A DNA stretch of 15,693 nt from Paragordius varius (taxonomy: Eukaryota > Animalia > Nematomorpha), in NCBI GenBank assembly GCA_964247055.1, contig OZ176061.1, positions 1 through 15,693 on the forward strand. Reading direction: 5' to 3'. Below are positions 3,414-7,448 of the stretch, in pieces. Each line of letters begins with the position of its first letter. Position 1 is the stretch's first letter. The notes below the pieces were generated by a model. It was not told where the DNA came from, ran no database searches, and worked only from the letters and a program-made list of their open reading frames with translations. The translations under genes and the position numbers were made by a program.

Positions 3414-4500
3414 AAATAAAAGGGGCCCTTTCGTACTACCTTTTAAAATATAGATAAAAGATAGGAACCGATCTGGCTTTCACCGATCTGAACTCAAATC
3501 ATGGATTATTTTAAAAGTCGAACAGACTTTCTTACTTTTTTACTGCAAAAAGTAGATCTAATAATTCAACATCGAGGTCGCAATCACTGTAAAGTATGTG
3601 GCCTACTGTTACTGTATTACGCTGTTACCCCTGGGGTAACTTTTTCTTATTCTCACACAACTCAACTATGTGGATCAAATTGAAATTTAATTTTTTGCAT
3701 TGATTGCCCCAATCAACCTCACAAACTTACAAGGAGAGCTCCCAGGGTCTTGCCTTCTTTTTATATACACGTGTATTTTCACACGTATTACAATTTCAAT
3801 TTTTATAAATATTTTTCCATTAGTAGTTTTACCTTTCATCCTAATTTTTCAATCAAAAAATAAATGATTATGCTACCTTCGCACAGTCAAATTACCGCGG
3901 CTACTTATATTCAAATAACGTAGAGCAGGTTAAATAATTAAAATTCCTAATTAATAAGTTTTTGATAAACATTCTACAAATTGAAAAGAATAATATTTAC
4001 ATCTGTAATAATTATAACAAATATAAGTACATAATTATATTTCTACTAATTTTCACAAAATAGCTTTAATTCTATTTATTTTAACTTTGTTATAATTATT
4101 ACAGATGTAAATATTATTCTTTTCAATTTGTAGAATGTTTATCAACATTAATTTATAAAAAACTATTATTTTAAGAAATTTTATCCTTACTATACTTTTA
4201 AGTCTCTTAAACCTCATCTATAAATAAAATAAAGCTCACCCTTATTTTAAGCCTAAATAAATTTAAGCACCTCCCAAGGGAGATAATTTTTACAAAGCCA
4301 GTTATTTGTAACCGTAAAATTATCTTTTCTAAAAATTTTATTCAAAGTATTTTCAACTACATATCTTTTAAATTTTTATCTCTTTCACATTTTCTGGTTG
4401 TCAAATTTATTACTTACACTTATAAAATCGTGTTGCAACAGGAATATAATTATTTTCAGCATTTTCATAACTAGATTTCTCAAACTATCGATTTTAATTT
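3414..4500 (-). rRNA. rrnL: Large subunit (16S) rRNA; ends approximate
   Basis: Reverse complements of conserved 16S motifs: CCGATCTGAACTCAAATCATG (~3482), TTCAACATCGAGGTCGCAA (~3565) and TATGCTACCTTCGCACAGTCAAATTACCGCGGC (~3869). Confidence 0.9.
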
Positions 4501-4504
4501 CTAT

Positions 4505-5250
4505 GCTAGAAGTCCTTTTTCAAAAAGACTAACTTTGTTACGACTTATCCTTCTAAGGAGTGACGGGCGATATGTGTATAGTGAAGAGTAATTTTCAAAA
4601 ATTTTTTCTTAATATATTTTTAATTTACTTTCAAATCCTAAATTGTTTGTAAGTATTTAACTACAAACTAAATTATAAAATCAGTCCTATTGTGCCCCAC
4701 CAAACTATTATAACACTGTATATTGATTTGAATTGATTTAATAAAATAAATTAAATAATTTCTTTATTTTTTAACAACTATATACAAGAGTTTACATAAT
4801 ATAAGGTTTATAGCGTACTATCTATTTAATTTGGCTAAACCCTTTGATTTAATTCACTACTGCCAATTTTTTAAGTTTCCTTTTTATACTACTATAGTTA
4901 TATGTAAATTCAATAGTAGGGTATCTAATCCTAGTTTTTAATTAACTTTTTCTAAATCAAGGATTTAATATTTTTATTTATAATCAATTTTACCTTTATT
5001 ATAATAAGAAATCCTTTTTAATTTTTACTTAACAAGTATTTTCCCTTTTTGTATAACCGCTAATGCTGGCACAATTATTCTTAAGAGTATTTTACCTACA
5101 AACAGATACCCTCGTTTACGTTATGATGTCTTACTTCACACATGTTGAAAAACAGCTTTACCTGTTAGTATATTTACCTACTTGTGAGTGCTTATAAGAA
5201 TTTAGTAAAATATACTTCATAAATCAAAACTAAATTTCTCTTTATGATGA
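4505..5250 (-). rRNA. rrnS: Small subunit (12S) rRNA; 5' end inferred from the adjacent trnC
   Basis: Minus strand carries GTGCCAGC...GCGGTTATAC (~5052-5073), CATATCGCCCGTCACTCC (~4557-4574) and GATAAGTCGTAACAAAG plus the terminal helix (~4510-4548). The 5' boundary is uncertain. Confidence 0.85.
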
Positions 5251-5283
5251 AAAGGGTATGCCTGTGAAAACAGGCTAGTTTTG
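5226..5283 (+). tRNA. trnI: tRNA-Ile (GAT), mirror copy in the left arm
   Basis: Exact inverted copy of 5340-5397. Confidence 0.55.
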
Positions 5284-5309
5284 AGCTTGCAACTCTTCAC
5301 TATACCCTT
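5251..5309 (-). tRNA. trnC: tRNA-Cys (GCA), D-armless; copy in the left arm of the palindrome
   Basis: AGGGTAT-AGTG-AAGAG-TTGCAAG-CTCAA-AACTA-GCCTG-TTTTCA-CAGGC-ATACCCT. The anticodon stem has only 3 Watson-Crick pairs. Confidence 0.55.
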
Positions 5310-5313
5310 AATT

Positions 5314-5372
5314 AAGGGTATAGTGAAGAGTTGCAAGCTCAAAACTAGCCTGTTTTCACAGGCATACCCTTT
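5314..5372 (+). tRNA. trnC: tRNA-Cys (GCA), mirror copy in the right arm
   Basis: Exact inverted copy of 5251-5309. Confidence 0.45.
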
Positions 5373-5397
5373 TCATCATAAAGAGAAATTTAGTTTT
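5340..5397 (-). tRNA. trnI: tRNA-Ile (GAT), D-armless
   Basis: AAAACTA-AATTTC-TCTTT-ATGATGA-AAAGG-GTAT-GCCTG-TGAAAA-CAGGC-TAGTTTT. It lies downstream of the nad1 stop on the same strand. Confidence 0.75.
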
Positions 5398-5417
5398 GAT
5401 TTATGAAGTATATTTTA

Positions 5418-6341
5418 CTAAATTCTTATAAGCACTCACAAGTAGGTAAATATACTAACAGGTAAAGCTGTTTTTCAACATGTGTGAAGTAAGACATCAT
5501 AACGTAAACGAGGGTATCTACCACGAGCTCACAAAAAATACAAGCAGGGGAGTATGAAATATCATGATATTTCATACTCCCCTGCTTGTATTTTTTGTGA
5601 GCTCGTGGTAGATACCACGAGCTCACAAAAAATACAAGCAAAAAATATAATAGCTATGTATTCAGCTATGAATACAACTGCAAATACTCCTGAATATATT
5701 TCTACATTAAATCCGGATACTAACTCTGATTCTCCTTCTATTAAGTCATAAGGGGTTCGATTTGTCTCTGCTAAAGCACACATTAACAGTAAAGCTATTA
5801 GGGGTACTAGTACCCCTAATAGCTTTACTGTTAATGTGTGCTTTAGCAGAGACAAATCGAACCCCTTATGACTTAATAGAAGGAGAATCAGAGTGAATAT
5901 TAAAACTAACTCATAAGATACAGCCTGAGTTAAAGCTCGATATCCACCTAGCAAAGAATATTTAGAATTTGATAATCACCCAATAAACAAAATTATGTAA
6001 ACACCTAACCCTAACATCACCATTACAAATAATATCGTAAAATCCATTATTAGAGCGAAAGATGCTTGGGTTAATACAACTTCGAAAAGGACCAAATAAA
6101 GTCCTAGTGATAGGACTGGTGCAGCCATTCATAGACGCAGTAAAACTATTCTCAAAAAGAAGCTTCTTTTTGAGAATAGTTTTACTGCGTCTATGAATGG
6201 CTGCACCAGTCCTATCACTAGGACTTTATTTGGTCCTTTTCGAAGTTGTATTAACCCAAGCATCTTTCGCTCTAATAATGTAAAAAAGGATATACCCACC
6301 AAAAGAGATGCTTGGGTTAATACAACTTCGAAAAGAACCAA
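5418..6341 (-). CDS. nad1: NADH dehydrogenase subunit 1 (307 aa; start TTG 6341 abutting trnL2, or ATT 6344)
   Basis: Motifs [44 protein letters not shown] and WARGSYPRLRYD. TAG at 5418-5420 and the frame is continuous in table 5. Confidence 0.93.
5513..5640. repeat. nad1 palindrome 5513-5616 (104 bp) plus an overlapping hairpin 5583-5610/5613-5640
   Basis: Centre TCATGA at 5564/5565. Direct repeat 5519-5546 = 5613-5640. Confidence 0.93.
5723..5894. repeat. Perfect 172-bp palindrome in nad1
   Basis: Centre ACTAGT at 5808/5809. Confidence 0.95.
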
Positions 6342-6342
6342 A
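6045..6342. repeat. Perfect 236-bp palindrome in nad1 (6045-6280) plus a third partial copy at 6306-6342
   Basis: Centre AAGCTT at 6162/6163. 6060-6089 = 6306-6335. Confidence 0.95.
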
Positions 6343-6406
6343 ATTACATGATCAGTATACGATCTTATTAGAATCTTAACTTCTAAGCATAATCTGCCAA
6401 TGTAAT
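6342..6406 (-). tRNA. trnL2: tRNA-Leu2 (TAA)
   Basis: ATTACAT-TG-GCAGATTATGC-T-TAGAA-GTTAAGA-TTCTA...GATC/GATC-ATGTAAT. Confidence 0.88.
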
Positions 6407-6666
6407 TTTTATAGTGGGTCACTGTTAATACCCGCCCCCCACCCCATCCTTACGTCCTTCTCTCCCCTCGTCTTCCTCTCTCCTTTCGTCACACTCGTCC
6501 GTTCACTCGTAAGATATCTTTCTATTATATACTCTTTCCTTATTCTTGTTATCTAGTATGCTCAATATCCAGTATGTACAGAGGTGGTCCTCGTCAGGCC
6601 CGAAAAAATTTAGGTGATGGTATACTATGAATATGGTTCCCCAAAATTCATGCACCCTTATCAATA
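6407..6666. promoter_or_regulatory. Non-coding region (candidate control region part) with a C-run and a polypyrimidine tract
   Basis: No gene found between trnL2 and trnV. It has CCCGCCCCCCACCCC at 6431-6445 and a pyrimidine tract at about 6446-6500. Regulatory function is inferred. Confidence 0.55.
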
Positions 6667-6724
6667 ATTATGGTGTTCTATTTTCTTTATGTAACAAAGA
6701 TGTTTTTAATTAAACTAACCATAA
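6667..6724 (-). tRNA. trnV: tRNA-Val (TAC), T-armless
   Basis: TTATGGT-TA-GTTT-AATTAA-AAAC-A-TCTTT-GTTACAT-AAAGA-AAATAGAAC-ACCATAA. Confidence 0.85.
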
Positions 6725-7448
6725 ATAAATACAGATTTTTTTTATTCTATATTATTTATGTTAAAATCTTGTCCGTCGGACAAGATTTTAACATAAATAA
6801 ATACAGATTTTTTTTATTCTATATTATTTATGTTAAAATCTTGTCCGACGGACAAGATTTTAACATAAATAAATACAGATTTTTTTTATTCTATATTATT
6901 TATGTTAAAATCTTGTCCGTCGGACAAGATTTTAACATAAATAAATACAGATTTTTTTTATTCTATATTATTTATGTTAAAATCTTGTCCGACGGACAAG
7001 ATTTTAACATAAATAAATACAGATTTTTTTTATTCTATATTATTTATGTTAAAATCTTGTCCGTCGGACAAGATTTTAACATAAATAAATACAGATTTTT
7101 TTTATTCTATATTATTTATGTTAAAATCTTGTCCGTCGGACAAGATTTTAACATAAATAAATACAGATTTTTTTTATTCTATATTATTTATGTTAAAATC
7201 TTGTCCGTCGGACAAGATTTTAACATAAATAAATACAGATTTTTTTTATTCTATATTATTTATGTTAAAATCTTGTCCGTCGGACAAGATTTTAACATAA
7301 ATAAATACAGATTTTTTTTATTCTATATTATTTATGTTAAAATCTTGTCCGTCGGACAAGATTTTAACATAAATAAATACAGATTTTTTTTATTCTATAT
7401 TATTTATGTTAAAATCTTGTCCGACGGACAAGATTTTAACATAAATAA
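6720..7448. repeat. Tandem array of 10 x 72-bp units (plus a partial unit), each with a 24-bp-arm hairpin
   Basis: The unit repeats exactly every 72 bp from 6721 to 7440. The only variable base is the hairpin centre (T,A,T,A,T,T,T,T,T,A). Confidence 0.97.

Follow-up and report, generated by a model that had tools for sequence, protein, structure and literature searches.

A perfect palindrome of 416 base pairs (bp) is found at positions 5104-5519 of contig OZ176061.1 from the hairworm Paragordius varius. The window, meaning the whole stretch of DNA analyzed here, is 15,693 bp long with 70% A+T and has the appearance of a complete invertebrate mitochondrial genome, with the usual 13 protein genes under code 5. 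Repeat-finder analysis delimited two arms of 208 nucleotides (nt) each, 5104-5311 and 5312-5519, which are complementary at 208 of 208 positions and are separated by a loop of 0 nt, bearing out the structure proposed in a first-pass annotation of this DNA. The borders of the arms are exact, with positions 5103 and 5520 unpaired (c versus a). A perfect inverted repeat with arms of 208 nt cannot be a product of chance in 15.7 kb. The palindrome spans four genes: nad1, trnI, trnC and the gene for 12S ribosomal RNA (rRNA), rrnS. We consider it rather likely that this is a real, lineage-specific giant palindrome of a gordiid hairworm, that nad1 was the donor of the sequence, and that the 12S begins near position 5183, within the left arm.

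The gene set and gene order of the window match those of gordiids (PMC10380579), and 82 inverted-repeat pairs are present in its 15.7 kb. The 416-bp palindrome is the longest among these 82 pairs and, among the 25 longest, the only one with arms in different genes; the other long pairs lie within nad1, nad2, nad3, nad4, nad4l, nad5, nad6, atp6, rrnL or a non-coding array. The first-pass annotation had called it the longest repeat present, which holds among inverted repeats and fails overall, as a tandem array of a 72-bp unit in ten copies at 6720-7448 is longer in total. It had also placed the element above the published maximum for hairworms, correctly so, since that maximum is a 284-bp palindrome (142-nt arms) in nad6 of Gordius sp. 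(PMC6649704). The arm spacing of 0 nt compares with a published nematomorph mean of 37 bp (PMC6649704).

Gene content and physical presence of the arms

The genes of the palindrome are read from the minus strand in the order nad1 end, trnI, centre, trnC and 12S, which is the same in other gordiids. Read in this direction, the right arm opens with the last 33 codons of nad1 and a TAG stop codon (SYPRLRYD...LMSI; 5519 to 5418, 102 nt), the conserved C-terminus of an open reading frame (ORF) that runs from 6449 to 5421 under code 5. A 19-nt spacer (5417 to 5399), trnI(gat) (5398 to 5339, 60 nt) and 27 nt of filler (5338 to 5312) mirroring the 5' part of trnC follow, up to the centre at 5312/5311. 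These ORF and transfer RNA (tRNA) coordinates agree with the earlier description of the right arm as the last 33 nad1 codons, the stop and trnI. The left arm continues with 2 nt of filler (5311 to 5310), trnC(gca) (5309 to 5251, 59 nt), a 67-nt spacer (5250 to 5184) and the first 80 nt of the 12S (5183 to 5104). Both tRNAs are D-arm-less with an 8-bp acceptor stem. The mirror image of the 67-nt spacer is made up of the final 22 nt of nad1, the 19-nt spacer and the opening 26 nt of trnI, and no tRNA was called on the minus strand of the 67-nt spacer (5184-5250) even at a relaxed ARAGORN threshold. As defined by an RNA contig described below, rrnS extends from 5183 to 4511 (673 nt), and its 530-loop motif GTGCCAGC (5072 to 5065) is located 31 nt outside the arm. 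The first-pass annotation was right about the end of trnC at 5251, while the distance from there to the motif is 178 nt rather than about 177 nt.

The two tRNA genes form a predicted antisense-overlapping pair with plausible cloverleaves and anticodons. The mirror copy of trnI lies on the plus strand of the left arm at 5225-5284, antisense to trnC, and that of trnC on the plus strand of the right arm at 5314-5372, antisense to trnI, with an overlap of 34 nt per arm. It is the 3' ends that overlap: the last 34 nt of trnI and the last 34 nt of trnC are reverse complements of each other, and the two genes have in common a 5-bp T-stem, GCCTG/CAGGC, which they read from opposite strands. At offsets 28-61 from the centre one arm holds trnI and the other trnC, and at offsets 129-208 one holds nad1 and the other the 12S. 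All other positions mirror something functional with no evident function of their own, making about 45% of each arm filler. By this count 114 of the 208 arm positions would serve two genes (trnI versus trnC, nad1 versus 12S) and would have to co-evolve. The coupling of protein, tRNA and rRNA constraints put forward in the first-pass annotation follows from this anatomy, and the palindrome may in that sense force the sequence of the 12S. Any change in the nad1 segment SYPRLRYD...MFTY would have to appear in the 12S and vice versa, and the same would apply to the 3' halves of trnI and trnC.

Presence of the palindrome in DNA was assessed from sequencing runs in the form of Logan contigs (k=31), which carry neither strand nor local depth. 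Run X1 is DNA-like: unique 12S sequence (4859-5132) has a depth of 4838 and unique nad1 sequence (5587-5752) a depth of 4871, whereas the arm piece 5131-5211 reaches 9941, or 2.05 times its flanks. An arm of another nad1 palindrome (5814-5894) stands at a similar 9490. The junction of 12S and arm, at which the 530-loop region is joined to antisense nad1, was recovered from three samples in two studies. A second individual, about 2% divergent in the 12S (run X4), yielded a contig covering 4794-5133, which ends exactly at the point where a repeat border at 5104 would interrupt a k=31 path. Run X5, with a different organism label and from a different study, has a depth of 3 and yielded a 151-nt piece (5035-5185, 2 mismatches) over the junction. 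There are two copies of the arm per genome, and the palindrome is physically part of the mitochondrial DNA (mtDNA) and not an assembly fold-back. A spurious inverted copy, introduced by folding back during sequencing or assembly and masking the true 12S 5' region, is thus very improbable, even though long reads with a missed adapter do yield zero-loop perfect palindromes and the best DNA run (X1) is probably from the same sample as the assembly. Such an artefact does not fit an arm depth of twice the flanks in k-mer contigs, nor a junction that recurs in a second individual, in a second study and in RNA. Both arms are moreover required for trnI and trnC to be on the minus strand, as they are in all gordiids, and the 82 repeats of this sort in the window correspond to the known hairworm pattern.

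The 12S 5' end and the probable donor arm

Run X3 comes from the same sample as X1 and is RNA-like, with depths of 18,245 at the 16S end, 6387 on the 12S and about 100-500 on nad1, the 12S being about 10-60 times deeper than nad1. One contig of this run (698 nt, depth 6387) matches 4511-5183 with 0 mismatches and then carries 25 T on the plus strand, equivalent to an A25 tail on a minus-strand RNA. The tail is non-templated, as the genome is not A-rich at this site, and position 4511 lies directly after the helix-45 hairpin of the 12S. At its other end the contig crosses the arm border at 5104 unbroken at high depth and ends at 5183. No X3 depth was found on 5184-5311 or its mirror, apart from a piece with 3 mismatches and unrelated flanks. 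The left border is therefore transcribed without editing, and the inner arms have no RNA coverage. That X3 contigs follow mature RNA ends is indicated by their stopping at 4440 and leaving 4441-4510 uncovered. The RNA-defined 12S of 673 nt compares with an rrnS of 662 nt in Parachordodes pustulosus (PMC10380579).

The start of the mature, polyadenylated 12S is most likely at 5183 or close to it. With this start, nt 1-80 of the 12S are the exact antisense of nad1 SYPRLRYD...MFTY, comprising 26 codons and two bases of the next. Because no RNA contig covers 5184-5311, the segment 5184-5250 looks like an excised spacer and not like rRNA. The first-pass annotation had assigned about 147 nt (5104-5250) to rRNA antisense to nad1 and trnI. 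The X3 contig supports a 12S 5' part antisense to the nad1 3' end over about 80 nt (5104-5183), but the full 147 nt, and with it the portion antisense to trnI, is not upheld, 5184-5250 having no RNA contig.

Structural searches of the 12S 5' domain were less informative. Rfam, run on the entire window and on 4480-5260, detected no part of this 12S with its small-subunit (SSU) rRNA models and returned only microRNA-model noise on the palindromes. From base pairing judged by eye, helix 18 may begin some 16 nt beyond the arm border. An 8-bp pairing of UGUUUUUC with GGAAAAUA, likewise found by eye at canonical positions 30-37, fits a 5' end at 5183 and is not significant in AT-rich sequence. It is a tentative and somewhat doubtful possibility that a working SSU rRNA has had its first 80 nt or so (the region of helices 1-3 and the central pseudoknot) overwritten by nad1 antisense and kept identical by arm-to-arm conversion. 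Part of the rRNA would then be under nad1 amino-acid selection, and the 12S would carry a built-in antisense able to tether or throttle the nad1 messenger RNA (mRNA).

The likely donor arm, as judged from sequence comparison, is that of nad1. Residue for residue, the C-terminus encoded in the right arm can be aligned with five nad1 proteins of other invertebrates over FLWARG..PR.RYD.L...WK..LP. The guanine plus cytosine (GC) content of the 12S part of the arm is 33.8%, against 35.2% for nad1 and 23.4% for the rest of the 12S. In P. pustulosus trnC abuts rrnS (0 nt), the trnC-trnI spacer is 11 nt and the trnI-nad1 spacer 1 nt, and neither tRNA contains an inverted repeat (PMC10380579). From the nad1 conservation, the GC content and this gene table it would follow that the palindrome is derived in the present lineage, that nad1 donated the sequence and that some 80 nt at the 5' side of the 12S were overwritten, with about 100 nt of additional spacer arising as mirror filler. 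Searches for orthologous hairworm sequence and for records of the region were negative. The longest stop-free nad1 piece (137 amino acids) as a query returned only proteins of at most 53% identity, and exact-protein look-ups of the ORFs over the centre and over the junction of 12S and arm found none on record. Neither a repeat table nor mitochondrial sequences covering this region are given in the supplements of PMC6649704 and PMC10380579. Six contigs (L001-L006) were considered as hairworm orthologues and rejected, as they have other gene orders and no trnI-trnC-12S downstream.

Two other placements of the 12S 5' end have to be set against a start near 5183. If tRNA punctuation applied, the 12S would begin directly after trnC at 5250, all 147 nt of 5104-5250 including the trnI antisense would be rRNA, and the gene would measure 740 nt. 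The abutment of rrnS and trnC in P. pustulosus (PMC10380579) speaks for such a start, as does a possible helix-3-like pairing of 5216 to 5205 with sequence immediately 3' of the apparent helix 18. This duplex was the best in a search of 5250-5104 against the segment after the 530 loop (-17.0 kcal/mol versus a shuffle mean of -11.6 +/- 2.5, p about 0.04), requires a 5' end at or upstream of 5241, and is at a roughly canonical distance from 5250. Its score is nonetheless marginal in AT-rich sequence. Neither 5184-5250 nor its mirror has a contig in the RNA-like run, although the 12S depth there is about 6400, and a length of 740 nt is 78 nt above that of the P. pustulosus rrnS, compared with 11 nt for 673 nt. 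A start at 5250 is for these reasons unlikely. Less probable still is a real palindrome with its arm outside the functional 12S, in which the mature rRNA starts no higher than 5103, or retains the 80 nt as an unprocessed leader without function, and the true 5' domain is lost or encoded elsewhere. The arm sequence does derive from a protein gene with nad1-like GC, no convincing helices 1-3 were found in it, and a shorter 5' end is conceivable given that the motif GTAGGTAAA(A/T)ATACT is present both at the RNA 5' end (5181 to 5167) and just outside the arm (5099 to 5086). However, the passage of the RNA contig over 5104 at high depth argues against this, the RNA-defined length agrees with the rrnS of P. 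pustulosus, and a 12S of about 593 nt or less would be without every element upstream of helix 18.

Several points weigh against a lineage-specific palindrome donated by nad1 with a 12S start near 5183. The sequencing evidence comes from Logan contigs only, and no read among the contigs examined crosses the entire palindrome. X3 was taken to be RNA and X1 to be DNA on the strength of depth ratios and the poly(A) tail rather than of run records. Strict proof of 12S-sense RNA reaches only 5133, as the k-mers of 5134-5183 are common to nad1 mRNA, and the contig could stop at 5183 because the graph breaks there and not because the RNA ends. A nad1 mRNA source should, for its part, have extended the 12S contig path to about 5205, and the contig ends at 5183. 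Searches for canonical 5' helices in the arm sequence gave marginal scores only. For the direction of donation, for the age of the palindrome and for the ancestral state of the 12S 5' region, the basis is one published gene table together with composition.

Neighboring repeats and diverged contigs

Adjacent to the right arm and inside nad1 is a further perfect palindrome of 104 bp (5513-5564/5565-5616), overlapping the arm by 7 nt, and a third palindrome (5583-5640) comes after it. A short motif, AGTAT(A)TTT(T)ACCTA, has six copies near the 416-bp palindrome, four direct (5035-5046, 5086-5097, 5167-5180 and 5407-5420) and two inverted (5203-5216 and 5443-5456). One copy is at the RNA-defined 12S 5' end and another just beyond the arm border. 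Two of the copies (5167-5180/5203-5216) pair in a local hairpin of 14 bp, the mirror image of which is found at the nad1 stop codon.

The tandem array at 6720-7448 consists of 10.1 copies of its 72-bp unit at 99% identity, each unit containing a hairpin that ARAGORN mis-calls as trnV or trnD. Runs under five other organism labels contained 7-15% of the words of 4000-7000 and none of 4505-5311; these hits may be mainly due to the array. A trnV(tac) is predicted at c6667-6724, adjoining the non-coding array. The 70-nt gap at 4441-4510, between the RNA-defined 16S 5' end (4440) and 12S 3' end (4511), is the site of trnV in other gordiids; ARAGORN found no tRNA-Val in it, and its sequence contains no TAC anticodon. 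At the 16S side of this gap an X3 contig of a depth of about 18,000 reaches 4440 and there turns back into the reverse complement of 4421-4430, folded around the 10-nt palindrome TGTTGCAACA, which looks like self-primed complementary DNA marking the 16S 5' end. In X4 two contigs with different variants (depths 80 and 193) cover 4419-4531, pointing to two mitochondrial haplotypes or a pooled sample.

Contigs were matched to the window at a cut-off of 85%, and several diverged contigs of low depth were found in this way. Those at 5312-5385 (or the mirror 5238-5311) are about 8% diverged, have depths of 86 in the DNA run and 2.4 in the RNA run, and match outward exactly from the centre; the 160-169 nt that precede the centre in them are absent from the mitochondrial genome. 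They were considered as alternative mitochondrial arrangements and rejected because of these unmatched ends, and are read as probable nuclear copies with a border at either the palindrome centre or the trnC 5' end. In another diverged contig of low depth (1236 nt, matching 5375-5759), the 136 nt between 5537 and 5674 with the second and third nad1 palindromes are replaced by 43 other letters. This contig could be a nuclear nad1 fossil which predates these palindromes or has lost them. Over 5522-5616 the summed contig depth amounts to 25,290 in X1 and 4796 in X4, well in excess of twice the mitochondrial level. The matches of many short contigs here are restricted to about 5567-5609, with unrelated sequence on either side; such contigs may represent dispersed nuclear look-alikes of this nad1 hairpin or low-complexity matches at the cut-off used.

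Formation, RNA processing and relation to known palindromes

The centre of the palindrome is 2 nt upstream of trnC, between trnI and trnC, and the seed of the element could have been the T-arm hairpin common to the two tRNAs. From such a seed the repeat would have grown outward by template switching at a quasi-palindrome or by arm-to-arm conversion, either of which would remove every mismatch. Active upkeep of perfect arms and a role for template switching have been proposed for all hairworm palindromes (PMC6649704). On one side growth would have halted some 16 nt before the apparent helix 18, where universally conserved elements of the 12S begin, and on the other side at the next nad1 palindrome. 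Both stops give the impression that the repeat grew as far as selection permits. The 67-nt stretch from trnC to the 12S would be discarded filler, present only to complete the mirror image.

The full hairpin has a folding energy of -359 kcal/mol, and the two tRNA cloverleaves -18.3 and -21.2 kcal/mol. On these computed energies a 208-bp duplex in the minus-strand precursor may compete with tRNA and rRNA folding, and it is from them that the choice between the two proposed in the first-pass annotation draws its support; since the hairpin far exceeds the cloverleaves, processing would have to be co-transcriptional or helicase-assisted. A 5' end at 5183 does not adjoin a tRNA and would need a non-tRNA cleavage or trimming of the 67-nt leader; cleavage away from tRNAs has been inferred at some sites in P. 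pustulosus (PMC10380579). The mature 12S 5' end and the nad1 mRNA could still pair after processing, in a perfect 80-bp duplex with a computed energy of -137.6 kcal/mol.

The palindrome resembles the coding palindromes described in nematomorphs (Mikhailov et al. 2019, PMC6649704) in having perfect arms with little or no loop, in being transcribed and in occurring among many per genome in gordiid mtDNA. One arm encodes conserved amino acids, and neighboring palindromes overlap in the manner described there. It differs in that the published examples have both arms in one protein gene and reach at most 284 bp, while the 416 bp found here set nad1 and trnI against trnC and 12S. In the published class both arms, by definition, encode conserved amino acids of a single protein, a feature that is absent here: protein-coding sequence is confined to 102 nt of the right arm, the left arm being made up of trnC, spacer and 12S. 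The hairpin-enriched mtDNA of P. pustulosus (Nikolaeva et al. 2023, PMC10380579) shares the gene block rrnS-trnC-trnI-nad1, has inverted repeats in rRNA and some tRNA genes, and has polyadenylated rRNAs and mRNAs. Its spacers in this block, however, are 0, 11 and 1 nt, compared with 67, 29 and 19 nt in the present genome, and no nad1-rrnS repeat is described there. Within the searchable literature, with subscription journals outside the search, neither a nad1-rrnS repeat nor one of this length was found described.

Two further systems are cited in PMC6649704, and the comparison is limited to what is cited there. The palindromic gene units of Polytomella magna mtDNA are likewise mitochondrial palindromes that contain genes, but each arm is a whole second copy of one gene, whereas here the mirrored end of one gene is part of another. 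Quasi-palindrome correction by template switching offers a mechanism that perfects and extends repeats from a short hairpin seed, such as the shared T-arm. It is a candidate mechanism for the present element, and leaves unexplained why hairworms alone accumulate such long repeats.

Annotation by tRNA punctuation would over-extend the 12S in this genome, and comparable palindromes may have gone unnoticed in other hairworms assembled from short reads. A 208-bp double-stranded RNA precursor, along with 80 bp of complementarity between an rRNA and an mRNA in an animal mitochondrion, raises testable questions on RNA processing and helicases. Hairworm palindromes have been known as a compromise inside single protein genes; here the same process appears to cross gene borders and to tie together a protein, two tRNAs and an rRNA. 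If it is true that the 80-nt segment works in the ribosome, the hairworm palindrome would be a natural experiment on how far the SSU 5' region can be replaced by unrelated sequence.

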